A stretch of DNA of 64,000 bases from Rhodosorus marinus CCMP1338 (lineage: Eukaryota; Plantae; Rhodophyta), in assembly GCA_029953675.1 (NCBI GenBank), contig JAMWBK010000013.1:1042936-1106935 (forward strand), read 5' to 3'. Of the stretch, positions 32,647 to 63,299 are shown piece by piece (within the stretch, counting starts at the first letter, position 1; the number at the start of each line of letters is the position of its first letter). The notes beneath the pieces were generated by a model. It had not been told where the DNA came from. It was given only the letters and a program-made list of their open reading frames with translations, and made no database searches. Both the position numbers and the translations under genes were made by a program.

Positions 32647-35600
32647 ATGGACTATCTGGATGCTGAGGTGAACCACACCTCGGCCCCGAAACCCGTTAGC
32701 GTAACGGTCGTCTGCCAGGAAGTTATGCCGTCCATGATTTAGGAACCCGGCTCCCTGGGCCCCAGGGAGGGACAGGTGTCCGGGATCTAGGAAACTATGC
32801 GGAGACATTCCCAGCCATCGGGGAGGGCCCTACAAGGCCAACCTTCGCAGAGTTTGCAGCTCAGAAAGAACCAGGGAGAGGAGGAGATGCTCGTTCCAGA
32901 ACTTCTGGACGCCCCGGACCCCAAAACCAGCAGGCTGCCCTGCGGCAACTGCACGCTACGGTCGGGGGGTCTGGCTGGGGACCCGATGTTGCTCCAGTCC
33001 TCGCGACGCTACGGAATGTCCGACCCCCAAGGCTGGATGAGGTGGCCCCTGCTGACTTTGCAACGATTCTTTGCAGAGCACTGGGTATGCCCAGCTCTTC
33101 TGTGGTGCATGTGGACTTTATTGCCTCCCATGCCTGCCTGCTGTGCCATCCAGACGCAATTCCGATTCTCCAAAGTGCCATGTCCCGAGGAGTTTTCCGG
33201 ACTGGGATTTTCGGATCCTTCACACAACGACACGCCAGTCGACAAGTAAGCCTTTACACTGGCCAGGCGCTGGACCCAGACAACCTTCTGGGTTACCTCG
33301 AACGTCAGACCATCGCTCCCGGGGATATCGCTGCCCACACGCTGAAGCGGGCCATCGAGCAGCTTATCCGCATTCGTTCGAGGATCCGCAGGCGACAACT
33401 CTCCTTCCACACTCTCGCAGCGCTCTACGAGTATCTGGAGGGACGACTAGAGCTCCTAAAAGCCAGGCAACATCCGCCTGAGGTACCCGGGGAGTGCGAG
33501 GAACCCCCTGGGCCTGCAGCCGCTTCGAACGCAGACCCTGAAGCCTCGTCCCTTCCAGGGGATGTACAGGCAGACCGTGGGACAGTTGACGCCCCGGTTG
33601 AGACTAGCGCGACTTCCCAAGTACCTGAGAACGCAAGCACACGAGGACAATCCACATGCGGAGCTCCTCTGCAACCTTCCGGAGCCACCTCAACAGAAGC
33701 GCTCGCGAGTATCCGCCGATGGCACCCGACCGGATACTGAGATGACTCCGGCAGCCGTGGAGACTCCACAGGATACCACTGTGACAGAGGTTGCCCTTGA
33801 CGGCAACCACCACGCAATGGACACGCAGGAGAGCCAGGAAAACCCAGCGCAATAATGCCGAGCAGACGTAGGGGAATCAAACGACGCCGCGACGAGCCTC
33901 TGTTCTTCTCGGATCGTCGAGACTGGATCAGACGGTGGAGCGTCTTCGTCGACGACGTCACGGAAGGAGGCAGGCAGTGGACGCGCCTTACCCACTGCCC
34001 GGTTCCCACACGGCGATTTGTGCCACGCGGCCAGGTCCATACATGGAGCTGCCTCTTCCGTGCTGCATTAGAGATGTCTATGGACAGCACCGCACCAACA
34101 AACGCCAGCCTGCTTCTTGTCGGACTTCCAGGCCTTGTCCTCGGACACTCTGCACTTGATGTTGGCATTCAGGTATCGCACGTGCTTGAAGGAGAATTCT
34201 CTACGGTCTGGAGCGCTCTAGAGGACAAGGCGTCTATGCTGTCGCATACTACCGCACCGCAAGGAGCTGAAGCGGTTCGACGCCAACATCTCGGGCGCCA
34301 CAAGCGAGCGTTGAAACTAGCACACCTTGGCCGCCTTTCAGATGCAGCTCGGAGCCTGCAGGCCACCGAAATGGCACCTTTTACCGCGGCTACGTGGAGA
34401 CAACTACAAGCGCTCTTTCCCGACCCGGCGGAAGGTGACTTACCAGACGAGATTGCACAAGCCCTGGAATCTTTGCTAGCCCTGAATACCGAAACACTTA
34501 AGCGGCGGTGGGATTCAAGAAAAGCGGCCGACGAGGGCCTCATGTCGATCGTGGCACGTCTTCCTCAGGGCAAGAGCCCAGGCCCTAGCGGTCTCCGCGC
34601 GGAACACCTCCAAGGTGCAACTCAACAGACGCAAGCGGCGTTGATTCGTGTATTGCGACAACTGGCGACCGCTCCGGAGAAATTTTCCCCGGCTCTGACC
34701 CGCGCCCTTCACAGCAGTCGACTCCTGCCGTTCGCGAAGCCTAACATGGGTTCAGTGACGCAGGAACATCCCGGAGTTCGCCCTATCGGAGTACCAGAAG
34801 TTTTGCGCAAGGTAGCAACGCAATGGACTCTTCACGCGGTTATGGACAGGGTGCGTGAGCTCCTGGTGCCCTTACAACTGGGTATTGGAGTAAGTGGCGG
34901 GTGCGAACGCTCACTTCACGTGATCCAGGCCCATTTGTCATGCGAACCCGATTCGGTGGTCCTTCGGCTAGACCTGGAGAATGCCTTTAATCGCATCGAC
35001 CGACGCCTTGCCAAGCAACTGGTGGACGAGCACTTCCCGGAGCTTGCACCAGTGTATAGACTTGGCTATGGAAGCGACAACGCGGACTCTGTGGCTGGCG
35101 ATCTTCCCCTGGACAGAACGAAACCGACACCTCTCGCCTGACTCTCCAAGCAGCTACAGGAGTCCAACAGGGAGATCCACTGGGGCCGGTGCTACATGCA
35201 CTATCCCTGGCGCCCTTTCTAAGAGCGTTGCGAGCCAAGTTCCCCAACGAAACGATTGTTGCTATCCACGACGATATCAGGATTGTCGGGTCGCTACAAG
35301 CCTTGAAGGCATCCCTGGCATGGGCAAAAACTGTGCTCCCCTCTCTCGGAGCATGCCTGCAACTCGGCAAGTGCACTGTGTACGGGCGAACACTGACTAC
35401 CACGCGAGTGGTCAACCATGAGATTCCTGGAGTCCAAGTGACCAGAGACGGAGTCACCATCCACTCGATACCGATAGGCAGCCGAGAATATATCGAACAG
35501 GAGTGCCGGGGGCTGCAAAATAAGCATGAGAAACTCTTTGAGGAAATTGCCAAGCTACCACAACCGGAGCTTACGACGCAAATTGCCCTCTTCAGGTTCT

Positions 35601-37119
35601 GTGCGGAAACGCGGCTAGACTATGTTCTACGATGCCTCGCATACGAGTTTGGAAGAACTCTGGCACGCGAGGCGGATGTGATGACCAGATATCATCTGGA
35701 AATTCTATTCGGCGGCCTCGCTACGACGGCTGTAGAGGACGACGAGTACGCAGAGCTGATCTCGGACCAAATCGCTCTGCCCTGCCGCTGGGGGGGGGTT
35801 GGGTTTCGCTACTCGAAAGCGCGTCCAACCCATCGCGTTCTACTTGTCATGGAGAAACACCTTCCGGAACAATGAAGATGAATGGCCATACCTGACTGAA
35901 CTGGACTTTACTAGCATAGCCTGAAGCGCTACGCAAACTAGAACGGGAGGTAACTAGAACGGGAGGTTTCGGCAGAACGCTCACCAGACTCATACGAGCC
36001 GATGGAGCAACGATGGTCGACTTCACAGCTGGCGGACCAGATCTGTGCATCGTCGCGAGCAATACAACGGAGGCTCGGACCAGAAACCCCGCCGCGGATC
36101 TTGGCACTGACTACCCTGCAACAACCGCGCGAATCATCTCTTCGAAGCGCACCGGGCGAGACTGCAGCTTGGAATAATGGTTCAATACAACAAACCCTCT
36201 CTCGAGAGGCACACCATTTTGCATTCTAAAGGTTGGTCACCAACCCACGAATCTCCCCCGAAAACCGAGCTCGAATACGGTCCGCCGCGGGATCCGGGTC
36301 GGGAGTCTGGCTGCGTGAAATACCAACGCTGACACCGAAAAAATTGAGTGCGGTTGAGATGCAGGTAAACGTTCGACAACTGCTGGGGCTGCCAATTCCG
36401 GGATTGCGGACCACCGAGAAAGTGCACTAGTTGCCGGAGTAAACACGGAAGGACTGGGGTACAACGGTTTCATCACTGTCCAACATCAACTGGACTGTGG
36501 CAACGTAGGCACGACGAAGTCTGCAGAGAGCTGGCACGGTGGCTGAGGCGATGGAACTTCATGGACGTAGAGCAAGAACCTGAGGGGTACTTCGAGAACT
36601 ACGGACTGCGACCTGATATCGTTGCTAGGCATCCGAGGACCAAACAAAGGTATGCGCTGGATGTGACTGTGGTGTCACCATTACAGGGAAAATATTTGCG
36701 GCGGAGCCAAGATGATAGCGGATACGCGGCGAGAGCTGCGGAGAAGTGGAAAATCGCTCACTACAAGGAAGCGATGGTGATCGAGAAACCGGATGAAAAA
36801 TTCATCCCGATGCGATAGAGACGTTTGGGCGTACGTGGCAATTGGCACAAGAGTTCCTCCGCGACAGCTGCAAACACCTGCTGCACAGGAGTGAGGAGCT
36901 GAGAGACGTGAGATCCCAGATAAACCGGCAACTATGGCGAGGTAACGCAGAGATAGCACTAAGCGCTTTGCGCGTGGACCAGTTGGAGAACCGCTGGTGC
37001 CTGTTTTTTCTTTTGAACGTAGCATGAGACCCCGGTAGCGGGGTTCCAGTAAGTTTTTCCCTAGATAGGATTAGACGTAGTGTTGCGCTGCAGTAGGCAG
37101 CTGCCCAGTAAAGTTTACG
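32647..37119 (+). mobile_element. Family A two-ORF REL non-LTR retrotransposon, near full length, disrupted
   Basis: ORF1 runs about 32650-33855 with frameshifts. ORF2 starts at 33855 and has RT motifs KSPGPSG, RPIGVPE, LRLDLENAFN, GVQQGDPLG, AIHDD and IALPCRWGG, a zinc knuckle C-x2-C...HHC, and REL motifs RPDIV, LDVTVVSP, EKWK, IETFG. Lesions relative to other copies: 10-nt deletion near 35089, an extra G near 35790, an insertion at 35901. The 3' end ...CAGTAAAGTTTACG abuts telomere repeats. Confidence 0.93.
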
Positions 37120-37150
37120 GTTACGTCTGGTGTTACGTTAGTCTGGGGTT
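37120..37150 (+). repeat. Interstitial telomere repeat between two family A copies
   Basis: GTTACGTCTGGTGTTACGTTAGTCTGGGGTT: one degenerate and one near-complete unit of the terminal 16-mer. Confidence 0.9.
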
Positions 37151-37313
37151 CCTCCGCGACAGCTGCAAACACTTACTGCACAGGAGTGAGGAACTGAGAG
37201 ACGTGAGATCGCAGATAAACCGGCAACTATGGCGAGGAACGGAGAGATAGCACTAGGCGCTTTGCGCGTGGACCAGTTGGAGAATCCGCTGGTGCCTGTT
37301 TTTTCTTTTGAAC
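37151..37313 (+). mobile_element. Truncated family A fragment
   Basis: Near-identical to about 36856-37020. Confidence 0.9.
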
Positions 37314-37541
37314 AGTGCAAAGTGTGAAAAGTCTGAAAAGTCTGAAAAGTGTGAAAAGTCTGCAAAGTGTGAAAAGCGTGAAAAGTCTGCAAAGTGTGGA
37401 AAGTGTGAAAAGTGTGAAAAGTGTAAAAAGTGTAAAAAGTGTAAAAAGTGTAAAAAGTGTAAAAAGTGTGAAAAGTGTAAAAAGTGTGAAAAGTGTAAAA
37501 AGTGTGAAAAGTGTGAAAAGTGTGGAAAGTGTAAAAAGTGT
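37314..37541. repeat. 9-bp tandem repeat (AAAAGTGTG/AAAAGTGTA/AAAAGTCTG), about 25 copies
   Basis: Visible directly; gives CEK/CKK, SVK and FLH periodic ORFs. Confidence 0.95.
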
Positions 37542-39640
37542 TTCCTGGTTGGGCGTATTGTTTGAAGCCCGGTCACACGGACTCGAGTGCGCGATTCGTC
37601 CAATTGGGATGGTTGAAGTAGTCCGGAAACTGGTGGCAAAGTGGTTGGTGAAGCTCCTCGTCCCCGAGTCCCACCGTTTCTTGGGGCACTCGCAGCTAGG
37701 CGTGTCTGTCGGGGTGGATGCGAGTTATTGTCCGTCCTCCTACGCTCAGAAATGGCATACTCCCCGGATTTCGGGTTAGTGTCTGTAGATTTTAGGAACA
37801 CATTCAACCGCGTCTCTCGCCCGGGTGTCATACATGTGGTGCGACAGGTCTTCCCTGTAGTATTTCCCGTTGCTAGCCGTATTTACTCTTCGCATGGTGA
37901 TCTGGAAGTTAATCACTGCAAATCCTTCTACTCGAGCGGTGCAGATGCCCACGCGCAGCAGGTTCCGGCGTCGTTCAAAGATATTTCGAGACGGGAAGGT
38001 TTTGTCCATTTGGGCATCCCGTACGGGTCGCCGTCCTTTGTTGAAGGCGAGTTGGTGACGCTATCTGGTAAGCACAGACAGCTGGTCTCGCAGCTCCGTC
38101 GGTTGCCTCTTGGCTTCTTGAGTTCTCGTTGTTGCTTTATCGATATCGTTGGAGTCAGCGGCTCATCTACTGGTTCCGCTCGCTCCCGACTCAATGGGTC
38201 CGGTGACTGGCCACCCGTACGACGACGAGAGCTTTGGTGAGCAGGGATAATTCTTAGATGAGGAGCTAGGTCACATTTCGCGCCCCACCCATGCTGTTGT
38301 TCGTGCCCAAGTAGGTCTCCCCCTCCGTTTGGGCGGTCTAGGCCTCTGTACCCGTGCTGTAAACCAACCAGCGGCCGTGGTCGGGTGGTGGGGCGCCGCC
38401 CTCCCCACGTTGAGCACGCTTGGGGGTGTCAACTTTCCGGAAGTTGGAGGTCGGTCTTTTTAGTGATGATCTACACTCTAGTGTCCCTGACAGTGCCCGT
38501 GGTTTGTTCCTCGAGCTCCAATCGGCGATGTTATTCTGCACCAGCCTCCCTGCCGACCTGCAGCCCCGCCTGGGTGGCTGGCGAGCTGTTTTTGCTCGTG
38601 TTGACGGCCCCTCGCCGCGACCAGCTGCCGGTCCTGTGCCTGCGGCGCTTGATCCTGTGATTGCTGGGGAAACTGAGGTCCCTCGTGATCTTCCTGATGA
38701 TGGACCGGGTTCTGGGAGTCGCGTTTCCGCACGCACGGATGGGTGCAAAACACGCTTTCTTGGGACTTGCACCGTGCTGCCTACAGCCGACTTCTCGCAC
38801 AGATGGTCTCATCTTCCCGAGATTCCGCCCGCCTGCGTAGTCTTGGAGGTGTACTAGCTCTCAGTGGCTCATGACCGTCCCTGCTTTTCCGCCACTCCCA
38901 AATCGCCGATTTCGAAGTGCGCACTTCCCTGCGCTTATATCTCGGCTTGCATTAGCCGCCATGGCCTTCCGAGATGGGTTCTTCGTGCCCTCTATGCTCT
39001 CAGAACGAAGACGCCGCGGATTTTGGCGCCCACCTGGTCGCCAGCTAGCTGCTGTGCAAGGCGACCGAACCCGACGACATGCGCGGATCTTGAACCTGTT
39101 ATACCGCGAACTTCGGCCTATCGTACGGCAAGCCGGTCTTGAAATTGAACCTGAGAAGTCCCTGCCTGTCGCGGACTACCAAAATGATGAACGCCGAGTG
39201 GCTGATTTCGCGGTCACCTGTGCTGATAGCCGCCGTACGACGAACGTTCATCTTGCAGTTCCTAATCCTCAGGCTAGTCGTTATTTGCCGGCTGCGGGAG
39301 AGCGCCGTGGATTTGCCAATGCCAGTATGAGTGGTAGGAAAGAGTTGAAATATGCGGAGGCGATGTTTTCCCAGGCATTCGCGCTTTCCCTCAACAAGCT
39401 CATCGCCTAGTAACTCTGGTCATCGAGTGCTTTGGGTTTCTTTATTCCGTTGGTTCTCGTTGGCTTGGGGAATTGTTCGAACACTCTGACCGTCTCTCGT
39501 CGTTCTTTACCCGTTTATGTTTCTTGCTGTGGCGTATGGACGCTGCTTTGATGTTAGAGGCGTGCGAGCTTCGCCGCGAGCAGTCTTTTTTTTCCCCTCG
39601 AGGTTTTTTCTTTCAATCTCCGTTTAAAAGATTTCATTCA
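37542..39640 (+). mobile_element. Degenerate family C-type element, RT core deleted, REL and 3' end present
   Basis: RPIGMVEVVRKL, VDFRNTFNRVSR, LGIPYG, LPLRLGGLG, VADFAV...VPNPQASRYLP, then a C-type 3' UTR ending ATTTCATTCA. The QGD/DD motifs are absent. Confidence 0.85.
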
Positions 39641-39827
39641 GTTTGACATCGCGCTCCCAGCGTCGCCCTCAAGAACGTCAGCTCCAGCAGATCGGCTTGA
39701 AATCCACGGTCAGCAGTAGGTTAAATGGCTTTACATGTTTTCTAACAACAGCACTAACTTAGACTTAAGTGTGCTAACGCAAGGCATAGTATAGGCCAGG
39801 AACGAGGCAATTCTGCATCTGTGTCTC

Positions 39828-40437
39828 TCACAGTCTGGGGTTACACACGACAAAAAGCTCACATACGGCAATGTCAGGTCCCTTGGCGACTCTGCGAGTG
39901 CAGTCATCTTCGACGTTCAACTCTGCTCTCAACTGTTCGCCATCTGCTTCCTTGACGATGGCGTGGGCAATGAGAAACAGAGGGGCAGCTTGACAACATC
40001 CCGCGTCGTCCGCCTCTATCTCGTTCTCACAGATAACTAAGCTCAACTTGTTCACAGGGGTGCCACTCGGAAGGCCCTTTTTCGTCAGGAACTTCTCAAC
40101 GTTCCTCCGGTTCGGGTATTCCACAGGTTCAGGGATGAACTCCTCCTTCGTGAAGATTCCCCCTCTGATGCTCACCAACGAGTACCTCTCCTCGACCCGG
40201 AATGTCATCCGAAAGCACGTTTTTGAAGCACGTTTTTGAAACGGTTCCCGGATCTCTTGAAACGACAACATCGCCAGCCGATGCAGAGACACCGGCGATA
40301 ATGAGCTTGCCAACGCGTTCCTCCACCAGGTCAATGTATAGACCGTTCGCAGCGGAAACATCTTCGCATGTCTGGAATTCTGCGGATACCACACACAGCA
40401 ACGCCACCGCACAACAATACCATGCCACCGATTTCAT
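39828..40437 (-). pseudogene. Secreted Cys-rich protein, paralog of the 51624-55234 gene, frameshifted
   Basis: Signal peptide MKSVAWYCCAVALLCVVSA. A 13-bp tandem duplication (40214-40226 / 40227-40239) splits the ORF; removing one copy joins ORFs 40129-40437 and 39828-40412 as ...GTVSKTCFRMTF.... Confidence 0.8.
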
Positions 40438-40749
40438 CTCTTCAAAAAGTTCTCACGGAAAAAAGGGGGCAGAATAGGGCCAACTGATCGATAAAACTGA
40501 TAAATACCCGGCAAGAGGACAAGCAAGTGTCAAAATCCTCACTCCCGCCTTAAGAGATGCATTTCCCTTCCTCCTCCCCTCCCCCACCCACACCGTTGTC
40601 GACGCCAAGTAGCTCTCTCGGGAGTTTATACTTCATCAGCACGATCCTTTACTAGGATTTTAGAGCGATGAAACCCGTTGACGCCTAGCTGAAGGAGCTC
40701 ATGTCCAACGGTTTTTCGGCTTCAGTTTTTGCTTTTTCTTTCTAGATAA

Positions 40750-42130
40750 AACTGGGGAACGCTCTTGGATGAGCCCCTCGATCTTGAAGCTGCTCCGACA
40801 GGGACTTTATTCGTGCACAGATCGCTCTACCGTTGCGATTAGGGGGATTCGGCGTCGCAGACCGTGGGCTGCTATGCTCGCCAGCGGCGGTTGCCTCCTG
40901 GGCTACCGCGCTGCGAACGTTGGTGACCTTCCAGACGCGAAGTGCCTGCCTCTTGGCTCGAGCTTTGACCAACGAGGATCCAGTGACCCTGCCGCCCCCG
41001 CTTTTGACAATTTATGATGGTCTTCAACACGCGTTTAGGAGGTGCAACGCCGTGCCGGACGCAAATCGGTCCCGCTTTCGTTCCTGGAGGGAGCTGTTAT
41101 GGGGACGAGCTGAAGCGATTGAGGATTGTCCCCTCGACCGAGTTCTTGCCGATGACGGAGAGGCTAGCCCCGGGTCCCCTGTTGCAGACTACCCGGGTTT
41201 GAGCCGATTGTGGAGCTCCCGCACTGATGTGATTCAACATAGCCTCACCTGGGTGGGGCCAACACAGTGCCGCTCACACAGTCATGCTCAATTCTCCTCT
41301 CACGCCGCCTACCACTGCCGCTCGTCTCCGCGGCATGGGAGGCCACCTCTCGCACTTGTGGTTAACCACTCTACCGTCGTCATTGAGTCATCGTCTCGAT
41401 GCTTTCCAGTTCCGTTCTGCCGCACGGATCTATCTCGGTTTGCCACAGGCTCCGTGGCACTCTAATCGGCCGTCTTTCTGTCAGGGATGTGAGAGCCGGA
41501 TTGACGCTTGTGGCTACCACTTCCTGGGTTCCTGCGGACTGTTGCGAGGTCTCCGTACGAGGCGTCACACTCGCCTCAAGTACATCCTCAGCGAATTTTT
41601 GACTCGAATAGGGCATACGGTTGAGGTTGAGTCGGAACTGCCCAGATCCATCTCGGACTCTGCACCGCCCCGTTGTATAGCCGATCTCCTCGTCTCTGAC
41701 GCTGCTGCCAGACGCTCAACATATGTGGACCTTGCGATTACCTGCCCCGTGGCCAGCGCCCACCTCACCGCAGCCGCCCGCCGCCGGGGGGCCGCGGCTT
41801 CAGCCCTTCGAAGAGTTAAGGAACGACGGTATGCTGAGAGCATGGCCAGTCTGCCTTGCGCTGAGGGTCGCTCTCACCGGTTCCAGCCATTCATTGTGGA
41901 AAGCTTTGGTCACGTGGATAAGTCGGGTTTAGAGTGGTTGCGGAAATGTTTTGCTGAGCATCCTACTGAATATTTGGCGCTCTTGAGGCGTTTAAGTGTC
42001 TCCCTTTGGCGATATTCCAGCGACATGCTGTCCGAGGCGCGCCATCGGCGCCTGGGGTTGCATACTTCCCTCCCTAGTTATTAGTTCATCTTCACGCCTT
42101 GCGTAGCGCTTCAGGCTATGCTAGTAAAGT
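40750..42130 (+). mobile_element. Family B copy 1, 5'-truncated
   Basis: Near-identical to about 45455-46830; a 4-nt duplication near 41250 causes a frameshift. Confidence 0.92.
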
Positions 42131-42139
42131 CCTATCATT

Positions 42140-42712
42140 CAAGTACATCCTCAGCGAATCTTTGACTCGGATAGGGCATACGGTTGAGGTTGAGTCGGAA
42201 CTGCCCAGATCCATCTCGGACTCTGCACCGCCCCGTTGTATAGCCGATCTCCTCGTCTCCGAAACTGCTGCCAGACGCTCAACATATGTGGACCTTGCGA
42301 TTACCTGCCCCGTGGCCAGCGCCAACCTCACCGCAGCCGCCCGCCGCCGGGGGGCCGCGGCTTCAGCCCTTCGAAGAGTTAAGGAACGACGGTATGCTGA
42401 GAGCATGGCCAGTCTGCCTTGCGCTGAGGGTCGCTCTCACCGGTTCCAGCCATTCATTGTGGAAAGCTTTGGTCACGTCGATAAGTCGGGTTTAGAGTGG
42501 TTGCGGAAATGTTTTGCTGAGCATCCTACTGAATATTTGGCGCTCTTGAGGCGTTTAAGTGTCTCCCTTTGGCGATATTCCAGCGACATGCTTTCCGAGG
42601 CGCGCCATCGGCGCCTGGGGTTGCATGCTTCCCTCCCTAGTTAAACCATTCGTTCGTTCGAGTTATTAGTTCATCTTCACGCCTTGCGTAGCGCTTCAGG
42701 CTATGCTAGTAA
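42140..42712 (+). mobile_element. Family B copy 2, 5'-truncated (REL domain and 3' end)
   Basis: Near-identical to about 46280-46830. Confidence 0.92.
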
Positions 42713-45700: not shown

Positions 45701-46855
45701 CCCCGCTTTTGACAATTTATGATGGTCTTCAACACGCGTTCAGGAGGTGCAACGCCGTGCCGGACGCAAATCGGTCCCGCTTTCGTTCCTGGAGGGAGCT
45801 GTTATGGGGACGAGCTGAAGCGATTGAGGATTGTCCCCTCGACCGAGTTCTTGCCGATGACGGAGAGGCTAGCCCCGGGTCCCCTGTTGCAGACTACCCG
45901 GGTTTGAGCCGATTGTGGAGCTCCCGCACTGATGTGATTCAACATAGCCTCACCTGGGGCCAACACAGTGCCGCTCACACAGTCATGCTCAATTCTCCTC
46001 TCACGCCGCCTACCACTGCCGCTCGTCTCCGCGGCATGGGAGGCCACCTCTCGCACTTGTGGTTAACCACTCTACCGTCGTCATTGAGTCATCGTCTCGA
46101 TGCTTTCCAGTTCCGTTCTGCCGCACGCATCTATCTCGGTTTGCCACAGGCTCCGTGGCACTCTAATCGGCCGTCTTTCTGTCAGGGATGTGAGAGCCGG
46201 ATTGACGCTTGTGGCTACCACTTCCTGGGTTCCTGCGGACTGTTGCGAGGTCTCCGTACGAGGCGTCACACTCGCCTCAAGTACATCCTCAGCGAATTTT
46301 TGACTCGGATAGGGCATACGGTTGAGGTTGAGTCGGAACTGCCCAGATCCATCTCGGACTCTGCACTGCCCCGTTGTATAGCCGATCTCCTCGTCTCCGA
46401 CGCTGCTGCCAGACGCTCAACATATGTGGACCTTGCGATTACCTGCCCCGTGGCCAGCGCCCACCTCACCGCAGCCGCCCGCCGCCGGGGGGCCGCGGCT
46501 TCAGCCCTTCGAAGAGTTAAGGAACGACGGTATGCTGAGAGCATGGCCAGTCTGCCTTGCGCTGAGGGTCGCTCTCACCGGTTCCAGCCATTCATTGTGG
46601 AAAGCTTTGGTCACGTGGATAAGTCGGGTTTAGAGTGGTTGCGGAAATGTTTTGCTGAGCATCCTACTGAATATTTGGCGCTCTTGAGGCGTTTAAGTGT
46701 CTCCCTTTGGCGATATTCCAGCGACATGCTTTCCGAGGCGCGCCATCGGCGCCTGGGGTTGCATGCTTCCCTCCCTAGTTATTAGTTCATCTTCACGCCT
46801 TGCGTAGCGCTTCAGGCTATGCTAGTAAAGTCCAGTAAAGTCCAGTAAAGTCCAG
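42713..46855 (+). mobile_element. Family B copy 3, two-ORF REL non-LTR retrotransposon, near intact
   Basis: ORF1 to 43682; ORF2 43713-46785 with one frameshift near 44205. The 3' end is followed by reiterated TAAAGTCCAG. Confidence 0.95.
43713..46785 (+). CDS. Family B ORF2 polyprotein: RT, CCHC, restriction-like endonuclease
   Basis: RCPGPSG, RPIGMVE, LVVDFRNAFNSVSR, GVQQGDPCG, CAYHDD, RFCAGPRLNYWLR, CQGC-x8-H-x4-C, IADLLV, YVDLAIT, KERRY, IVESFG. The 850-aa ORF 44233-46785 is open. Confidence 0.93.
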
Positions 46856-47153
46856 ATAAATGAAACATTCTTAATGTTGTGGTTGTGTTCCAAAAGGTTT
46901 GCAAGCCACAAGATTCCAAGGGAAACATGGAAAACGCAGTTAAAATTATTTGAGCCAATTGAGAAAATCGCAAGAGATTGAAAATATATGAAGTCATAGC
47001 TGGGCATATTATTTAGGAAAAGAAGATCATAGATATTGCAAATATAACTATCAAACAGTATACTGTAAGCATAAATTGTAATAAATTCATCGCCTTGTCT
47101 TAGAAACGTTTCTCTCTCTAGAGGGGTAGGTGATGAAGGCTCGCGCTAGCCTA

Positions 47154-47605
47154 GCTGAATGAATGGTTTAATCGGAGGCTGAAAAAAAAACCCCGAGGGG
47201 AAAAAAAGACTAAGCGCGGCGAAGTACTCGCGCCTCCAACATCAAAGCGGCATTCATGCGCCACAGCAGGAAACTTAAGCGGGTAAACAACGATTGAAGA
47301 CGGTCAGGGCGTTCGCGGAACAACGCGCGGCAGGGGTACCAAGCGCTAGCTAGCCTAGCTAGCGCTTGGTACCCCTGATCATTGAGTGCTTTGGGTTCAT
47401 GGACTCTGTTGGTTCTCGCTGGCTTCGGGAGTTGTTCCGCGAACGCCCTGACCGTCTTCAATCGTTGTTTACCCGCTTAAGTTTCCTGCTGTGGCGCATG
47501 AATGCCGCTTTGATGTTGGAGGCGCGAGTACTTCGCCGCGCTTAGTCTTTTTTTCCCCTCGGGTTTTTTTTTTTTTTCAGCCTCCGATTAAACCATTCAT
47601 TCAGC
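47154..47605. repeat. Fold-back of two family C 3' ends with a central palindrome
   Basis: Arms 47154-47324 and 47431-47605 are reverse complements apart from homopolymer length. 47331-47377 is a 23-bp perfect inverted repeat with a 1-nt spacer. Confidence 0.93.
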
Positions 47606-48001
47606 CTAGCGAAGCGAGAGAAGCACTGTTGGACAAATTCATTCATTAAATGAATTTATTTAGTCGCTCATCGGAGCCTATTTGCGAAGAACAAATTGTA
47701 GAATTACGTAGCTTGTAGTTAATGACCGGATGTAGTTTTTTTTTGGGTCGGGGGGGAGGGGGGGAGGGTAGGTGGTTTTAACCACATCCCAGGTAATTCA
47801 GGATTCTCTATCGACTTTTACGTAGTCTCTGATTGGCTGGATCCTCTTCTCCCAACGGTTTTTGCTCTCTCCGACCCCCATCGATGGAATGCTTCCAAAA
47901 CCATTCGTTTGTATCATTCGAACGAATGGTTTAATCATTAGTGAAACAGTAAAGTCCAGTCCAGTGAAACCACCATTCATTCGGCGACGGTTAGTCTGGG
48001 T

Positions 48002-49683
48002 TCACTTGCACTCCAGGAATCTCATGGTTGACCACGGTAGTCAGTGTTCGCCCGTACACAGTGCACTTGCCGAGTTGCAGGCGTGCTCCGAGAGAGGGGA
48101 GCACAGTTTTTGCCCATGCCAGGGATGCCTTCAAGGCTTGTAGCGACCCGACAATCCTGATATCGTCGTGGATAGCAACAATCGTTTCGTTGGGGAACTT
48201 GGCTCCCAACGCTCTTAGAAAGGGCGCCAGGGATAGTGCATGTAGCACCGGCCCCAGTGGATCTTCCTGTTGGACTCCTGTAGCTGCTTGGAGGGTCAGG
48301 CGAGAGGTGTCGGTTTCGTTCTGTCCAGGGGAAGATCGCCAGCCACAGAGCGTCGGTGAGTCCGCGTTGTCGCTTCCATAGCCAAGTCTATACACTGGTG
48401 CAAGCTCCGGGAAGTGCTCGTCCACCAGTTGCTTGGCAAGGCGTCGGTCGATGCGATTGAAGGCATTCTCCAGGTCTAGCCGAAGGACCACCGAATCGGG
48501 TTCGCATGACAAACGGGCCTGGATCACGTGAAGTGAGCGTTCGCACCCGCCACTTCCTCCAATACCCAGTTGTAAGGGCACCAGGAGCTCACGCACCCTG
48601 TCCAGAACCGCGTGAAGAGTCCATTGCGTTGCTACCTTGCGCAAAACTTCTGGTACTCCGATAGGGCGAACTCCGGGATGTTCATGCGGCACTGAACCCT
48701 TGTTAGGCTTCGCGAACGGCAGGAGTCGACTGCTGCGAAGGGCGCGGGTCAGAGCCGGGGAAAATTTCTCCGGAGCGGTCGCCAGTTGTCGCAATACACG
48801 AATCAACGCCGCTTGCGTCTGTTGAGTTGCACCTTGGAGGTGTTCCGCTGGGAGACCGCTAGGGCCTGGGCTCTTGCCCTGAGGAAGACGTGCCACGATC
48901 GACATGAGGCCCTCGTCGGCCGCTTTTCTTGAATCCCACCGCCGCTTAAGTGTTTCGGTGTTCAGGGCCAGCAAAGATTCCAGGGCTTGTGCAATCTCGT
49001 CTGGTAAGTCACCTTCCGCCGGGTCGGGAAAGAGCGCTTGTATTTGTCTCCACGTAGCCGCGGTAAAAGGTGCCATTTCGGTGGCCTGTAGGCTCCGAGC
49101 TGCATCTGAAAGGCGGCCAAGGTGTGCTAGTTTCAACGCTCGCTTGTGGCGCCCAAGATGTTGGCGTCGAACCGCTTCAGCTCCTTGCGGTGCGGTAGTA
49201 TGCGACAGCATAGACGCCTTGTCCTCTAGAGCGCTCCAGACCGTAGAGAATTCTCCTTCAAGCACATGCGATACCTGAATGCCAACATCAAGTGCAGAGT
49301 GTCCAAGGACAAGGCCTGGAAGTCCGACAAGAAGCAGGCTGGCGTTTGTTGGTGCGGTGCTGTCCATAGAGAGCTCTAATGCAGCTCGGAAGAGGCAGCT
49401 CCATGTATGGACCTGGCCGCGTGGCACAAATTGCCGTGTGGGAACAGGGCAGTGTGTAAGGCGCGTCCACTGCCTGCCTCCTTCCGTGACGTCGTCGACG
49501 AAGACGCTCCACCGTCTGATCCAGTCTTGACGATCCGAGAAGAACAGAGGCTCGTCGCGGCGTCGTTTGATTCCCCTACGTCTGCTCGGCATTATTGCGC
49601 TGGGTTTTCCTGGCTCTCCTGCGTGTCCATTGCGTGATGGTTGCCGTCAAGGGCAACCTGTGTCACAGTGGTATCCTGTGGAG
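48002..49683 (-). mobile_element. Inverted 5' segment of a family A copy
   Basis: 533-aa minus-strand ORF 47991-49592 is near-identical to 33855-35450. The left junction is a telomere repeat (47989-48002). Confidence 0.93.
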
Positions 49684-50673
49684 GCAAGTGACCAGAGACG
49701 GAGTCACCATCCACTCGATACCGATAGGCAGCCGAGAATATATCGAACAGGAGTGCCGGGGGCTGCAAAATAAGCATGAGAAACTCTTTGAGGAAATTGC
49801 CAAGCTACCACAACCGGAGCTTACGACGCAAATTGCACTCTTCAGGTTCTGTGCGGAAACGCGGCTAGACTATGTTCTACGATGCCTCGCATACGAGTTT
49901 GGAAGAACTCTGGCACGCGAGGCCGATGTGATAACCAGATATCATCTGGAAATTCTATTCGGAGGCCTCGCTACGACGGCTGTAGAGGACGACGAGTACG
50001 CAGAGCTGATCTCGGACCAAATCGCTCTGCCCTGCCGCTGGGGGGGGTTGGGTTTCGCTACTCGAAAGCGCGTCCAACCCATCGCGTTTTACTCGTCATG
50101 GAGAAACACCTTCCGGAACAATGAAGATGAATGGCCATACCTGACTGAACTAGAACGGGAGGTTTCGGCAGAACGCCCACCAGACACATACGAGCCGACG
50201 GAGCAGCGATGGTCGGCTGCACAGCTGGCGGACCAGATCTGTGCATCGTCGCGAGCAATACAACGGAGACTCGGACCAGAAACCCCGCCGCGGATCTTGG
50301 CACTGACTACCCTTCAACCACCACGCGAAACACCTCTTCGAAACGCACCGGGCGAGACTGCAGCTTGGAATAATGGTTCAATACAACAAACCCTCTCTCG
50401 AGAGGCACACCATTGTCCATTCCAAAGGTTGGTCACCAAGCCACGAATCTCCCCTGAAAACCGAGCTCGAATGCGGTCCGCCGCGGGGTCCGGGTCGGGA
50501 GTCTGGCTGCGTGAAATACCAACGCTGACACCGAAAAAATTGAGTGCGGATGAGATGCAGGTAAACGTTCGACAACTGCTGGGGCTGCCAATTCCGGGAT
50601 TGCGAACCACCGAGAAGTGTACTGGTTGCCGGAGTAAACACGGAAGGACTGGGGTACAACGGTTTCATCACTG
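49684..50673 (+). mobile_element. Forward segment of the same family A copy
   Basis: Resumes at GCAAGTGACC, where the inverted segment stops; near-identical to about 35435-36480 without the B-tail insertion. Confidence 0.92.
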
Positions 50674-51623
50674 CCCACCGGCAGTCCTGACCAGAACTCT
50701 CCGCATCAGCAGGCTTCTGCCGTTTGTCAAGTGCTCTACTATTGGGCCCCCACCTGCGAACCCTGCTGTCAGATTTATTGGCGTTCCTGAGGTCCTACGA
50801 ACGCTGGCGACACAGTGGGTACTAGATCACCTGACCACACGACTTCGGGAGCTCTTCGTGCCTCTGCAACTAGCCCTTGCCGTCAGTGGAGGTTGCGAAC
50901 GGTCCCTGCACGCAATATAGGCCCATCTCTACTGTGAACCATAATTGGCAGTTCTACGATTCGACCTGGCGAATGCATTCAACCGAATTGATCGGCGTAT
51001 TGCTAAACAACTAGTCGACCGCCATTATCCAGAGCTGGCAACCATCTACCGCCTGGGATATGGAAGCAACTGCGAGGACTTATCTACGCTCCTTGGCTGG
51101 CGCCCCAAAGCTACAGACGGAGCACTGCACCCAGATCGACCACACCTGCAAGCGCAGACGGGAGCAGAACAAGGAGATCTTTTGGGACCTGGCTTACACG
51201 CCCTCTCACTGGCGCCTTTTCTCGAAGCACTGCGGCAGAAATACCCTGAGCTGACTACTGTCGCCATCCATGACGATATCACGCTCGTGAGCCCCCTGGA
51301 GTCTCTGAAAGCTGCCCTACTGTGGAGTCGAAATGCCCTCCCTACCATTGGGGCGGGAGGCTCGCTCCCACCAGTTCCAACTTTTCATTGTGGAAAGCTT
51401 TGGTCACGTGGAGAAGTCGGGTTTGGAGTCGTTGCGGAAATGTTTCGCTAAGCATCCGGTTGAATACTTGGAACTTTTGCGGCGTTTAAGTGTCTCTCTA
51501 GGGCGATATTCGAGCAGCAAGCTGGTCGAGGCGCGTCATCGGCGCCTGGGTTTCCACGCTTCCCCACCTAGTTCTTCGTTCCTTTTCACGCCTTGCGTAG
51601 CGTTTCAGGCTATGCTATAAAAG
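50674..51623 (+). mobile_element. Chimeric segment: diverged A-like RT (to about 51335) fused to a diverged B-like 3' end
   Basis: RFIGVPEVLR, FDLANAFNRIDR, EQGDLLGP and AIHDD, then SHQFQLFIVESFG and a B-type tail GCGTAGCGTTTCAGGCTATGC. Confidence 0.85.
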
Positions 51624-54600
51624 TCAAAAACCAGGAAGGTCAGAGGAACGTATGGCACAAGTCCCGTTTCCCGATCGAACAACATCCTATCGCGTGTGAA
51701 AAAAAAGAGGAGAGCACAGTAGGAAAACGTGAGCGATCAGATATCTACGCTGGAGTATCAACGATAAAGGGCCTCATATGAAAAACCCGTATGGTCGTTT
51801 CTATACATACAACTTGAAGTCCCGTGCAATCCCTCCTTTGGCAAAAGTTGTCAATAATTCCGTCGATTGGTATACAGGCGAAAGTCTCAAAAGGCCCAAA
51901 ATCCAGGCATTCGACATTCGAGCAAGGGCTTTCGCATGTACAGAACCCATCTTGGTTCGTCCCAATCTGGAAAACAAAAGGCACCAAACAGTCCGCTGTT
52001 AGGCTCGTCCATATGATATATATAGCCGTTTTCGTCGTTGGGCTTGTGATAGAGTTTTATCTTACGAAGTGCTGAGGACATGATTCACCAAATGTCGTGA
52101 CATCCGTGCAGGCACGATCTGCAATGCAATTCGCTTCTGTGCCACAGTCAAGTTTCTTACAGGTACATTGCCGGTTCTGGGTGTCCGCAACAGCAATCTA
52201 AACAGAACAACAGGAACATGCAGAGTTTAGGACTCCGAGAAAGGGATAAACCTCTTCAAGATTGGTTTAGAAGCCATCATCAGCGATTTGCGGCTCGATA
52301 TACCGAATCAGCTGCGCAGTTTGCTTCGGAAAATTCGTCAAGCAGAACGCGGTCTTCTCCGAGCAAGCAAAAACCAGGAAGGTTAGAGGAACGTATGGCA
52401 CAAGTCCCGTTTCCCGATCGAACAACATCCTATCGCGTGTGAAAAAAAAGAGGAGAGCACAGTAGGAAAACGTGAGCGATCAGATATCTACGCTGGAGTA
52501 TCAACGATAAAGGGCCTCATATGAAAAACCCGTATGGTCGTTTCTATACATACAACTTGAAGTCCCGTGCAATCCCTCCTTTGGCAAAAGTTGTCAATAA
52601 TTCCGTCGATTGGTATACAGGCGAAAGTCTCAAAAGGCCCAAAATCCAGGCATTCGACATTCGAGCAAGGGCTTTCGCATGTACAGAACCCATCTTGGTT
52701 CGTCCCAATCTGGAAAACAAAAGGCACCAAACAGTCCGCTGTTAGGCTCGTCCATATGATATATACAGCCGTTTTCGTCGTTGGGCTTGTGATAGAGTTT
52801 TATCTTACGAAGTGCTGAGGACATGATTCACCAAATGTCGTGACATCCGTGCAGGCACGATCTGCAATGCAATTCGCTTCTGTGCCACAGTCAAGTTTCT
52901 TACAGGTACATTGCCGGTTCTGGGTGTCCGCAACAGCAATCTAAACAGAACAACAGGAACATGCAGAGTTTAGGACTCCGAGAAAGGGATAAACCTCTTC
53001 AAGATTGGTTTAGAAGCCATCATCAGCGATTTGCGGCTCGATATACCGAATCAGCTGCGCAGTTTGCTTCGGAAAATTCGTCAAGCAGAACGCGGTCTTC
53101 TCCGAGCAAGCAAAAACCAGGAAGGTTAGAGGAACGTATGGCACAAGTCCCGTTTCCCGATCGAACAACATCCTATCGCGTGTGAAAAAAAAGAGGAGAG
53201 CACAGTAGGAAAACGTGAGCGATCAGATATCTACGCTGGAGTATCAACGATAAAGGGCCTCATATGAAAAACCCGTATGGTCGTTTCTATACATACAACT
53301 TGAAGTCCCGTGCAATCCCTCCTTTGGCAAAAGTTGTCAATAATTCCGTCGATTGGTATACAGGCGAAAGTCTCAAAAGGCCCAAAATCCAGGCATTCGA
53401 CATTCGAGCAAGGGCTTTCGCATGTACAGAACCCATCTTGGTTCGTCCCAATCTGGAAAACAAAAGGCACCAAACAGTCCGCTGTTAGGCTCGTCCATAT
53501 GATATATACAGCCGTTTTCGTCGTTGGGCTTGTGATAGAGTTTTATCTTACGAAGTGCTGAGGACATGATTCACCAAATGTCGTGACATCCGTGCAGGCA
53601 CGATCTGCAATGCAATTCGCTTCTGTGCCACAGTCAAGTTTCTTACAGGTACATTGCCGGTTCTGGGTGTCCGCAACAGCAATCTAAACAGAACAACAGG
53701 AACATGCAGAGTTTAGGACTCCGAGAAAGGGATAAACCTCTTCAAGATTGGTTTAGAAGCCATCATCAGCGATTTGCGGCTCGATATACCGAATCAGCTG
53801 CGCAGTTTGCTTCGGAAAATTCGTCAAGCAGAACGCGGTCTTCTCCGAGCAAGCAAAAGCCAGGAAGGTTAGAGGAACGTATGGCACAAGTCCCGTTTCC
53901 CGATCGAACAACATCCTATCGCGTGTGAAAAAAAAGAGGAGAGCACAGTAGGAAAACGTGAGCGATCAGATAACTACGCTGGAGTATCAACGATAAAGGG
54001 CCTCATATGAAAAACCCGTATGGTCGTTTCTATACATACAACTTGAAGTCCCGTGCAATCCCTCCTTTGGCAAAAGTTGTCAATAATTCCGTCGATTGGT
54101 ATACAGGCGAAAGTCTCAAAAGGCCCAAAATCCAGGCATTCGACATTCGAGCAAGGGCTTTCGCATGTACAGAACCCATCTTGGTTCGTCCCAATCTGGA
54201 AAACAAAAGGCACCAAACAGTCCGCTGTTAGGCTCGTCCATATGATATATACAGCCGTTTTCGTCGTTGGGCTTGTGATAGAGTTTTATCTTACGAAGTG
54301 CTGAGGACATGATTCACCAAATGTCGTGACATCCGTGCAGGCACGATCTGCAATGCAATTCGCTTCTGTGCCACAGTCAAGTTTCTTGCAGGTACATTGC
54401 CGGTTCTGGGTGTCCGCAACAGCAATCTAAACAGAACAACAGGAACATGCAGAGTTTAGGACTCCGAGAAAGGGATAAACCTCTTCAAGATTGGTTTAGA
54501 AGCCATCGTCAGCGATTTGCGGCTCGATATACCGAATCAGCTGCGCAGTTTGCTTCGGAAAATTCGTCAAGCAGAACGCAGTCTTCTCCGAGCAAGCACT

Positions 54601-55234: not shown

Positions 55235-55733
55235 CTCTCTTCTTACAAACACCCGCACTCGTTCCGTCCAATTCCTCCTTTCCGACGAACAAAAACTCCT
55301 ATCAGTGCCATGCTGAGCAGAATACTTTACCTTAGCTGCCCCTCCAACCTGCCCATTCTCATCCAGCTACCACATCCGAAGCACAGCGAACTTAAACCCT
55401 ACTTGCGGAAGACGTCCTCCGAATCTGTATATAGACGATAGCAACCACCTATGAAATAAGCGCTCACCACCTCTAACCGCAGCCCCTCGTCTCAAGCGGA
55501 AGCAACATCACGCTTTCCCCCCCCTACGGCTGGGGTAAAATTCGAACCAGTAAGCTACTAATGACGCCAGTAAAGCGAGCCAGCTAATAAACCCAGAACA
55601 AAACTAGATCAAAACGGAAACTACTGAATCTCGGATTGGCTGGATCATCCAACCTATCGGTTTTATTGGCATCCAACACATCAACGGCCTTTTCTGCTGA
55701 GCGACGACCATAGTCTGTCAAAACTCAGTATGC

Positions 55734-56061
55734 AGAGGCTCCACCGGCGTTTACGGAGCGAGTTCTCCGCTGAGGACATCGACTGCGATAACCCCAGACT
55801 GCGAAAAGGGATGAGCGTCTAACGACATTTTGGTGGTCTCTGATTGGCTGTATCCACTTTTCCAAAAAATCACGAATAATTTGAAACCCACCGGAGGACG
55901 CTGCAGAGGACAACCCGCACGCGGAGCTTTTGGAGAAGTGGATACAGCCAATCAGAGACCACCAAAATGTCGTTAGACGATCATCCCTTTTCGCAGTCTG
56001 GGGTTATCGCAGTCGATGTCCTCAGCGGAGAACTCGCTCCGTAAACGCCGGTGGAGCCTCT
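55734..56061. repeat. Inverted repeat, 134-bp arms with 60-nt loop, each arm carrying a 12-nt telomere core
   Basis: 55734-55867 is the reverse complement of 55928-56061 with about 2 mismatches. TAACCCCAGACT at 55789-55800 and AGTCTGGGGTTA at 55995-56006. Confidence 0.93.
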
Positions 56062-56065
56062 AACG

Positions 56066-56560
56066 TACGTTAGTCTGGGTACGTAGTGATCGTGTGATGC
56101 GCTACATTAGGTAGCTGCCCAATAAAGGCTACGGGGTTATAGCGGATACGCGGCGAGAGCTGCGGAGAAGTGGAAAATCGCTCACTACAAAGAAGCGATG
56201 GTGATCGAGAAACCGGATGATAAGTTCATCCCGATAGCGATAGAGACGTTTGGGCGTACGGGGCAAATGGCACAAGAGTTCCTCCGCGACAGCTGCAAAC
56301 ACCTCCTGCACAGGAGTGAGGAGCTGAGAGACGTGAGATCCCAGATAAACCGGCAACTATGGCGAGGTAACGCAGAGATAGCATTAGGCGCTTTGCGCGT
56401 GGACCAGCTGGAGAATCCGCTGGTGCCTGTTTTTTCTTTTGAACGTAGCATGAGACCCCGGTAGCGGGGTTCCAGTAAGTTTTTCCCTAGATAGGATTAG
56501 ACGTAGTGTTGCGCTGCAGTAGGCAGCTGCCCAGTAAAGCTTACGGTTACGTTAGTCTGG
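56066..56560 (+). mobile_element. Telomere repeat, diverged A-type tail, GGGGTTA, 5'-truncated family A 3' end, telomere repeat
   Basis: TACGTTAGTCTGGG at 56066-56079; diverged tail 56080-56133; A fragment about 56140-56545, near-identical to 36716-37119; GTTACGTTAGTCTGG at 56546-56560. Confidence 0.9.
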
Positions 56561-56571
56561 TTTTTTTTTTG

Positions 56572-63272: not shown

Positions 63273-63299
63273 ACTTCGATGGACAACCGATGCACTTGC

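Follow-up and report, generated by a model that had tools for sequence, protein, structure and literature searches.

The chromosome end analyzed here, from the red alga Rhodosorus marinus CCMP1338, carries a family of retrotransposons without long terminal repeats (non-LTR), family A, that on sequence evidence is a real telomere-repeat-targeting family of the restriction-like endonuclease (REL) type with the polarity of the Bombyx mori element SART1, an unusual combination of features. The stretch examined (the window) is the final 64 kb of contig JAMWBK010000013.1 (contig 13) in assembly GCA_029953675.1, and its end is the contig end. We put at roughly 0.75 the probability that family A, together with its relatives A2 and A3, consists of R. 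marinus REL-type non-LTR retrotransposons that use target-primed reverse transcription (TPRT) to insert into the double-stranded 16-bp telomere repeat. An earlier note on this DNA had proposed a telomere-repeat-specific REL element in a probable red alga; the host is indeed a stylonematophycean red alga (PMC10250338), and every sequence quoted in that note, including three A-type 3′ ends and three 5′ junctions, was found where it had been placed.

Telomeres have been reported on 12 contigs of this assembly, and the main text of the genome paper gives neither the repeat sequence nor telomeric transposons (PMC10250338). In the window, 21.3 copies of the 16-mer GGGGTTACGTTAGTCT occupy 63661–64000 (+) and run to the contig end. 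The same unit was found at a second chromosome end, that of JAMWBK010000007.1 (contig 7), where about 31 copies form the terminal array (contig L003, 1–507, reverse strand), and in L004, a Logan contig from the unrelated run SRR32518361. The analysis covers 2 of about 18 assembled telomeres, contigs 13 and 7, plus one foreign contig; the end region of contig 7 was retrieved completely as L002 and L003. To our knowledge, telomere units outside budding yeasts are usually 5 to 9 nt, so a 16-nt unit is far longer, and no published description of it for R. marinus was found in the literature searched. Allowing up to 3 mismatches, the 16-mer matched the window 22 times against 0.40 expected, with two internal matches at 37129 and 56543. 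Outside the terminal array there were seven in-phase telomere runs of at least 11 nt, six of them on the plus strand, while shuffled windows averaged 0.34 such runs and never had more than 3, and five of the seven sit exactly at A-type element boundaries.

The 3′ ends of family A were uniform in this respect, as all five A-type 3′ ends (window 37119, 56133, and 56545; contig 7, 8721 and 23975) are followed by telomere phase, which begins at G4, G4, G4, G3, and G2 of the unit. Copy 1 (32796–37119, +) stops at 37119 with ...CCCAGTAAAGTTTACG and is continued by GTTACGTCTGGTGTTACGTTAGTCTGGGGTT; a 5′-truncated copy (56140–56545, +; equivalent to A 36715–37119 and 97% identical to 36715–37126), with the complete 3′ end ...AGTAAAGCTTACG, stops at 56545 in ...CCCAGTAAAGCTTACG, after which GTTACGTTAGTCTGG occupies 56546–56560 (+); and a severely 5′-truncated, diverged tail of 54 nt (56080–56133, +) ends with ...AATAAAGGCTACG at 56133, followed by GGGTTA (56134–56139, +), a telomere remnant between two A-type insertions. 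Three of the five junctions are identical, with ...TAC(G/A) joined to GTTACGTTAGTCTGG. By comparison, none of nine tails of family B, a second element family in the same arrays, leads into telomere (Fisher P of about 5 × 10−4 versus five of five for family A).

The 3′ terminus of copy 1 (37087–37119, +) comprises the hairpin GCTGC-AGTAG-GCAGC (37087–37101), TGCCC, AGTAAAG (37107–37113), and TTTACG (37114–37119), while the 54-nt tail has GCTAC-ATTAG-GTAGC, AATAAAG, and GCTACG. When six A-type tails were aligned (three from the window, two from contig 7, and one from a JGI transcript), each had a hairpin of 5 bp closed by a loop of 5 nt; a short spacer leads from it to AGTAAAG (in one tail AATAAAG), and NNTAC(G) concludes the element, poly(A) being absent. 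Pairing is kept in all 30 of 30 hairpin cells, compensatory changes occur at two pairs (GC/CG/AU and GC/AU/GU), and the observed covariation score was reached by only 3 of 500 shuffles; with six sequences, these data are suggestive of a covarying 3′ hairpin. The bases preceding the telomere phase vary by subfamily (TTTACG, CTTACG, GATACA, GCTACG, and TGTACGC) around an invariant TAC, indicating that they are inherited with the element.

Telomere sequence also lies upstream of family A. The 5′ flank at 37149/50 ends with ...TCTGGGGT(T), that at 48002 with ...TCTGGGTT, and that at 56079 with ...TCTGGG, and seven of eight upstream flanks at A-type 5′ junctions, one of them from Logan contig SRR32518361_81810, end within GGG...GGGGTTA, with stop points at GGGGT(T), GGGTT, GGG, GGGTTA, GGGGT, GGGGT, and GGGGT. 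A weaker 5′ junction is the 10-mer GGGGTTACGT at contig-7 position 8622, about 0.7 such 10-mers being expected by chance in 24 kb on our estimate. The tract at 37120–37149 (+), about 1.9 degenerate units, separates copy 1 from an internal A fragment (37148–37313, +; A 36853–37018), which is 95% identical to 36853–37018 and to 56278–56444 and has a (GTGAAAAGT)25 satellite downstream (37315–37541). The remnant TACGTTAGTCTGGG (56066–56079, +) precedes the 54-nt tail, and GTTAGTCTGGGTT (47990–48002, +) lies directly upstream of an inverted A segment; hence, the 5′ junction that had been assigned to 48002 does have a telomere flank but is not an ordinary 5′ end. Among the A-type copies, at least six distinct 5′ truncation points contrast with five common 3′ ends, and no terminal direct repeats flanking A copies were seen in a self-comparison of the window.

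The second chromosome end yielded the same picture. A3, a 2.5-kb 5′-truncated relative with a single frameshift and about 47% amino acid identity to A, adjoins the contig-7 terminal array on its proximal side, and its 3′ end, ...TTCAGTAAAGTGTACGC followed by GGTTACGTTAGTCTGGGGTTACG..., leads straight into the array of about 31 units. At the 5′ junction of A3, ...TTAGTCTGGGGTTACGTTAGTCTGGGGT is followed by AACCCCAGACT and then ctgacg, with 1.75 telomere units upstream. Further in, a 90-nt A tail, ...CCCAGTAAAGGATACA, is followed by GTTACGTTAGTCTGGGGT and then gtcgggacc, the 5′ region of the A-like element A2. L004 holds a 5′-truncated A-like ORF1 (ORF, open reading frame) with 81.5% nucleotide identity to A, immediately preceded by ...GGGGTTACGTTAGTCTGGGGT. 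Telomere remnants without an A tail before them thus number four (47990–48002, 56066–56079, contig-7 21412–21439, and L004 1021–1067), and because no A tail precedes them they represent pieces of telomere rather than the end of an upstream element. These results support the view that A ends are joined specifically to the telomere repeat, with the sense strand on the G-strand, as the earlier note had it for the window and as now seen also at a second end and in an independent read assembly. Two small features were noted beside A3: an inverted telomere 11-mer (AACCCCAGACT) at its 5′ junction (L002 21438–21450), and, inside the contig-7 array, an insert of CAGACTAACG plus TGTACGC (c7end 23999–24015, equal to L003 468–484, reverse strand) that repeats the last 7 nt of A3. 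Both look like tiny abortive or inverted insertion products.

Alternatively, the telomere bases could be borne by the element. Family A would then carry about one unit at its 3′ end, through read-through or as a fixed part, and would insert by earlier copies or anywhere subtelomeric, giving head-to-tail arrays without targeting. The tracts are indeed short (6 to 30 nt), three 3′ junctions are identical, family B makes head-to-tail arrays on its own tails in the same region, an A-like transcript reads past the element end, and the telomere bases halt after 15 nt at 56560, where unrelated DNA follows. However, on this account variably 5′-truncated copies should not be preceded by remnants that lack an A tail, as is the case at all four sites listed above, nor should the upstream flanks stop at one repeat phase, and A3 lies inside a genuine terminal array of about 31 units. 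We therefore consider this explanation improbable. The earlier note had itself raised the prospect that the telomere-like bases are part of the element consensus, and the four remnants bear on this point.

Several observations weigh against integration targeted to the telomere repeat. The identical 3′ junctions could have been inherited from a master copy via read-through RNA and not re-created at each insertion. Interstitial telomere tracts never exceed 2 units, unlike what is expected of a random hit in an array of 20 to 30 units, and upstream of the 5′ ends near 32796 and 59160, which belong to the two longest copies, no telomere tract is present. The JGI transcript contig L008, from an A-like relative, ends at 3165–3232 with hairpin-TTTT-AGTAAAG-CGTTCACG-GTTAGAAGTTTCAC-AAAA, so that this RNA extends past the AGTAAAG+8 end before its terminal A-run. 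In another JGI transcript contig, L009 (2536–2900), an A-like 3′ untranslated region (UTR) is truncated after ...CCTAGATAG, where an NHL-repeat gene on the opposite strand adjoins it; L009 may be a non-telomeric 3′-truncated copy or a chimeric transcript contig. Finally, no fully intact A copy was seen on the two ends examined.

The proteins place family A among REL-type elements. Copy 1 is near full length (4.3 kb) and decayed. Its ORF1 (32796–33737, +) is open over 942 nt, and its differences from two relatives by codon position (115/57/35 and 107/61/30) show a third-position bias from which ORF1 appears to evolve like coding sequence. ORF2 (+) has its ATG at 33855, a reverse transcriptase (RT) region at about 34770–35400, and a CCHC knuckle plus REL at about 36300–36990. 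Copy 1 is dead, with several frameshifts and a 35-nt family-B tail insert: in tblastn, the 840-aa A-like protein P0050 matched copy 1 with 83% and 70% identity in two frames, and homology to the A3 C terminus at 36302–36988 is spread over three. Hence copy 1, described before as complete, is so in length only, and the start formerly set at 32647 gained no support, as homology with two relatives begins at about 32796. Pfam RVT_1 was matched by the A ORF of the inverted window copy (E = 1.8 × 10−5; 25 bits, below the 29.6-bit gathering score), by P0050 (E = 2.5 × 10−9), by A3 (E = 3 × 10−13), and by family B (E = 1.5 × 10−15), and the best PDB sequence matches of the family B ORF2 were R2 proteins (1.9 × 10−14), then L1 ORF2.

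C-terminal to the RT, the columns C41-x2-C44-x13-H58-C59, RH, E91, RPD104, and D119 were conserved in a 10-sequence alignment of A3, B, and eight environmental relatives, as were WL..LP and RLG. Since copy 1 is frameshifted there, the 241-aa C-terminal region was modelled (AlphaFold/AF2; mean pLDDT, 76.7) from A3, the best-preserved relative. The seven best Foldseek matches of this model in the PDB are all R2 (E = 8.7 × 10−9 to 2.7 × 10−5; 195 to 243 aligned columns), with other PD-(D/E)XK nucleases ranking after them. Exo_endo_phos, the apurinic/apyrimidinic (AP) endonuclease domain, gave no Pfam match in any ORF at E values up to 1; Pfam likewise detected neither Myb nor zinc-finger domains in ORF1 and the ORF2 N terminus, ORF1 having no Pfam match at all. 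Together, sequence and model support the assignment of family A to the REL-type non-LTR retrotransposons, with an RT, a CCHC knuckle, and a predicted R2-like PD-(D/E)XK nuclease, in agreement with the original proposal.

For the REL/linker domain, 1,884 representative relatives were counted at E ≤ 10−3, of which only 4 remain at E ≤ 10−30, suggesting that the superfamily is wide and family A's own family narrow. P0050 derives from an MMETSP transcript, as does the representative P0053, and a sister transcript cluster of P0050 is named Rhodosorus marinus in UniRef; A-like ORFs in R. marinus MMETSP transcripts indicate that A-like elements are transcribed. Homology searches with A ORF2, B ORF2, and ORF1 returned MMETSP transcripts, environmental relatives, and one annotated R. 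marinus gene pair (NDN08_004843/4), which is also subtelomeric (NDN08_004844 lies 12 to 24 kb from the end of contig 7), and no further R. marinus loci. Exact-protein look-ups led to NDN08_004844 (via P0048) and a 181-aa neighbor, both on contig 7; the Ty3 gag ORF, the A and B ORFs, and P0001 were not on record by this route. A metagenome scan for two telomere units gave 0 matches. Two other candidates were set aside: the 36 metagenome matches to an A-tail 17-mer were all attributable to chance, none having the hairpin upstream, and the contigs of the environmental relatives L005 and L006 stop at element borders and are uninformative on targets. In the same window, a 465-aa cyclophilin ORF matches 1061745–1063142 of JAMWBK010000013.1, a contig of 1,106,935 bp, at every residue.

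Orientation bears directly on the mechanism. The sense strand lies on the G-strand in 17 of 19 RT/REL fragments on the two ends, one exception being the 5′ inversion described below. An element whose sense strand is the G-strand and whose 3′ end is distal requires a C-strand 3′-OH to prime its first-strand cDNA, and such a 3′-OH is available only after an internal nick, whereas use of the chromosome's natural 3′ overhang as primer would give the opposite polarity. In the mechanism that we propose, the ORF2 REL would nick the C-rich strand within the C-run or beside it, and the 3′-OH thus released on that strand would prime cDNA synthesis at the RNA 3′ end (TPRT), in a register probably set by telomere-like bases at or beyond that end. 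A cut of the G-strand 1 to 3 bp away, around GGGGT^T, would then serve second-strand synthesis, and telomerase would maintain or rebuild the array distal to the insert. Repeated cycles of this kind, with family B insertions, breaks, and telomere healing, would have built the arrays of 15 to 31 kb. The nick proposed previously, TCTGGG^GTTACG, is compatible with the data but is not fixed by them, as the 3′ junction could be inherited via read-through RNA. Priming by the TTACG end, proposed along with it, was not established: if a C-strand primer ending ...CGTAAC simply base-paired with ...U(U)ACG-3′, the observed duplication, TTACG joined to GTTACG, would not arise. Read-through RNA carrying some repeat would yield that junction and preserve the register.

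Capture of cDNA at eroded or broken ends without any endonuclease (e.g., with the G-overhang priming the second strand), followed by telomerase re-capping of a telomere-like 3′ end, has the attraction that healing events are clear on both ends. At the current end of contig 13, telomere has been added at 63660 to a broken A-like fragment, ...GCTTCTA followed by GGGGTTACG, the fragment being part of an A-like ORF2 cut at both ends (63274–63660, +; tblastn to P0050 residues 704–833, 46% identity). In the second event (L002 20449–20935), telomere has been added at contig-7 position 20869 to a cut B copy, ...AAGTACCTGG followed by GGTTACG, and this copy carries an interstitial, partly degenerate array with the variants GGGGTTAGTTTGTCT and GGGGTTATCT. 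On sequence grounds, these are chromosome breaks that were healed when telomere was added at microhomologies of CTGG or GGGG. The very short upstream tracts are likewise what eroded telomeres would leave, the conserved TAC(G) end resembles the repeat, and the uniform GGGGT flank end could reflect the nucleotide at which the G-strand naturally terminates. Nevertheless, healing junctions begin at GGGG or CTGG microhomology, unlike A 3′ junctions, which begin with G(G)TTACG; RT priming by a 3′ overhang gives the orientation of HeT-A/TART, with the 3′ end proximal, and the observed orientation needs a C-strand 3′-OH and thus an internal nick; conservation of the REL domain extends over A3, B, and about 1,900 relatives; and the inverted copy needs DNA on both sides of the break. 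End capture is therefore, in our judgment, very improbable.

This inverted copy begins directly after the remnant GTTAGTCTGGGTT. An inverted A segment (48003–49683, −; A 33764–35446, 97% identity when reversed), which includes an RT-encoding 533-aa ORF (47991–49592) with Pfam RVT_1, is contiguous with a direct segment (49679–50677, +; A 35428–36482). The two segments are contiguous in the element as well, with a 10- to 19-nt overlap; about 7 nt of microhomology (TGGAGTC) marks the inversion point near 49683, and TCTGG is common to the remnant and the A antisense strand exactly at the join of the inverted segment. An inverted-then-direct structure is reportedly produced by L1 twin priming (Ostertag and Kazazian 2001), and the window structure at 48003–50677 shares with it the inverted 5′ segment, the contiguous direct segment, the overlap, the microhomology, and target flank on the inverted piece. 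It differs in that the element is of the REL type, that a telomeric G-strand end would be the second primer, and that there is a single example. By analogy, the structure implies a free G-strand 3′-OH within the repeat and DNA on both sides of the break; in terms of TPRT, the G-strand end would once have primed internally on the RNA, giving the inverted 5′ segment 48003–49683.

Because upstream remnants hold at most 2 units compared with 21 to 31 units in terminal arrays, one can further read the data as insertion at the array's proximal border or into telomeres that have become critically short, with family A acting together with telomerase as a second, retrotransposon-based buffer of chromosome ends in the red alga. 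On this possible but doubtful extension, the REL/ORF2 protein would read the 16-bp unit and, with SART-like polarity, would be, among known REL-type enzymes, the first that nicks the telomere C-strand, as well as a natural integrase specific for a long site.

Family B, the internal control of this analysis, occupies 40748–46860 (+) without telomere tracts at its junctions. It comprises the 5′-truncated copies 40748–42132 and 42139–42713 and a 4.1-kb copy (42714–46833, tail (AGTAAAGTCC)3), all on the plus strand, the latter with an intact 850-aa RT-CCHC-REL ORF2 (44233–46785, +). Its tail consists of a 7-bp hairpin, a T, AGTAAAG, and (TCCAGTAAAG)n, and in its head-to-tail arrays 5′-truncated copies are joined directly to the previous tail. 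On contig 7, it is found at L002 12213–16936 and 19067–19743. Inside copy 1 of family A, positions 35903–35953 (−; tandem 16-mer 35936–35967) hold a 35-nt family-B tail and, after it, AACTAGAACGGGAGGT for the second time, giving a 16-bp target-site duplication, and the empty site is kept in copy 2 at about 50148. As read from these sequences, this insertion provides direct evidence of family B moving by TPRT into non-telomeric DNA.

The two families share their arrays with other relatives. A telomere-adjacent hybrid (59160–63271, +) combines a 5′ A-like ORF1 (76% identical to A and 94% to the contig-7 copy) with a 3′ B-like RT/REL and tail (79 to 83% to B), a mosaic pointing to template switching or to recombination of one family with the other; it contains internal tandem duplications (59380–59774/60225–60611 and 61484–61987/61991–62490). 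A diverged relative with 30 to 40% amino acid identity to B in tblastn lies at 37564–39650 (+). Family A contributes to the array that fills the terminal 31 kb of contig 13, in line with the earlier note, along with family B and other relatives, and on both chromosome ends one-directional element arrays of 15 to 31 kb lie between the last genes and the telomere. One might ask whether non-site-specific elements simply gather near ends through relaxed selection, subtelomeric recombination, or break-induced replication, with the junctions being leftovers of old telomeres. Subtelomeres are indeed shared between ends (over 4.1 kb, the family B sequences of contigs 13 and 7 have 98.6% identity), and segmental copies, tandem 743-bp repeats, and palindromes are present. 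Such passive accumulation, however, leaves unexplained why only A-type ends touch the telomere (five of five, versus none of nine for B), why both junction types have a fixed phase, and why 17 of 19 fragments share one orientation, and we disfavor it as having hardly any likelihood.

Other features of the array were also recorded. Positions 56561–57530 hold T10 plus a 960-bp copy of 29853–30813 (99.3% identity), a segment within an annotated CLC chloride-channel gene. An end-primed mRNA retrocopy was considered for it and rejected, as its source, within the CLC gene, has the same orientation and the copy is collinear with genomic DNA; its sequence marks it as a duplication at the DNA level rather than a processed retrocopy. 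A 743-bp unit in four tandem copies (51621–54598; 99.6% identity) begins right after a B-like tail. A near-perfect palindrome (55734–56061), with 134-nt arms, a 60-nt spacer, and a telomere 12-mer in each arm (TAACCCCAGACT and AGTCTGGGGTTA), suggests fold-back repair of an old end, and a telomere 13-mer (AGTCTGGGGTTAC, 39832–39844) that adjoins no recognized A end may mark another old chromosome end. An ORF with Ty3 capsid and retrotransposon gag domains (57316–58176, −; E = 9 × 10−15) represents an LTR retrotransposon fragment in the array. A partly palindromic dispersed repeat of about 170 to 240 nt occurs within the arrays and 63 kb from the end (47151–47609, 58644–58880, 32407–32581, and 582–700), as well as in the foreign Logan contig L004 (523–821).

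Among known systems, MoTeR, FoTeR, and Cnl1, from Magnaporthe oryzae, Fusarium oxysporum, and Cryptococcus, respectively, are telomere-associated REL non-LTR elements of fungi belonging to the CRE/SLACS group (PMC7367193, PMC12857005). Like family A, MoTeR1, FoTeR, and Cnl1 combine an RT with a REL, lack LTRs, are frequently 5′ truncated, and form head-to-tail arrays in one orientation; they occur only at chromosome ends, inserted in telomere repeats, and family A is likewise telomere located on the ends examined. Telomere tracts between MoTeR copies range from half a unit to a few units, and one new insertion lies a single repeat from the telomere boundary (PMC7367193, PMC12857005); tracts of more than 3 units break (PMC7367193). 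The short interstitial tracts of family A follow the pattern reported for MoTeR (PMC7367193). The polarity, in contrast, is opposite: in MoTeR the 5′ end is the one closest to the chromosome end, and in FoTeR TAACCC comes after the 3′ end (PMC7367193, PMC12857005), whereas the 3′ end of A points toward the chromosome end and continues into the G-strand. Family A is further set apart from these elements by its 16-bp target unit, the presence of ORF1, and its rhodophyte host. No MoTeR-like run of variant telomere repeats was seen at the A 5′ terminus (32796, 59160, or contig-7 8740), a weak result, as the full-length 5′ end is not securely defined.

SART1 of Bombyx mori, an R1-clade element specific for telomere repeats, resembles family A in having its sense strand on the G-rich strand (TTAGG in SART1), in inserting at a fixed position in duplex repeats, and in encoding ORF1 and ORF2 (PMC7265360). 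Its 3′ UTR structure and short telomere-like RNA bases help to set the start of reverse transcription, and it uses an N-terminal AP-type endonuclease and poly(A) (PMC7265360), whereas family A has a C-terminal REL and an AGTAAAG-NNTACG end without an A-run. The SART1-like orientation that had been recognized in family A, and its contrast with elements pointing the other way, thus fit the published accounts (PMC7265360, PMC7367193, PMC12857005).

R2, the rDNA-specific REL element of animals, is the best structural match of the A3 linker-CCHC-REL region and the best PDB sequence match of the B ORF2, and both R2 and family A have a structured 3′ UTR. R2 integrates site specifically by TPRT, with the two strand cuts a few base pairs apart. 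It differs from family A in its 28S target, in its single ORF, and in its N-terminal zinc-finger/Myb DNA-binding domains, a kind of domain not detected in A, and identity in the aligned C-terminal domain is only 14 to 18%. The Giardia elements GilM and GilT carry a REL domain and, like A, are non-LTR elements arrayed at chromosome ends. In them, telomere repeats are joined to the 5′-truncated ends, so that their polarity is opposite to that of A. Both elements are listed as telomere-associated (PMC10088271). HeT-A and TART attach their proximal 3′ ends to chromosome ends without telomerase repeats, the reverse of A, whose orientation is opposite and whose arrays are of the telomerase type. A 2023 survey of telomeric retrotransposons covers insects, Giardia, Chlorella, a fungus, a lizard, and rotifers, and no red algae (PMC10088271). 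Consistent with what the earlier note stated, the literature searched yielded no description of a telomeric retrotransposon in Rhodosorus or other red algae.

Telomere-repeat-specific retrotransposons are rare, and family A extends the phenomenon to Rhodophyta. It would show that a REL-type element can take SART-like polarity, which demands a C-strand nick, and it offers an enzyme that apparently recognizes a 16-bp repeat. Families A and B, with the same protein architecture, hairpin plus AGTAAAG tail, and location but different targets, provide a ready system for mapping target choice, while the long 16-nt unit bears on the telomerase RNA template of the Rhodosorus lineage. For R. marinus itself, the analysis gives a concrete account of how subtelomeres may be constructed from element arrays, breaks, and telomere healing.

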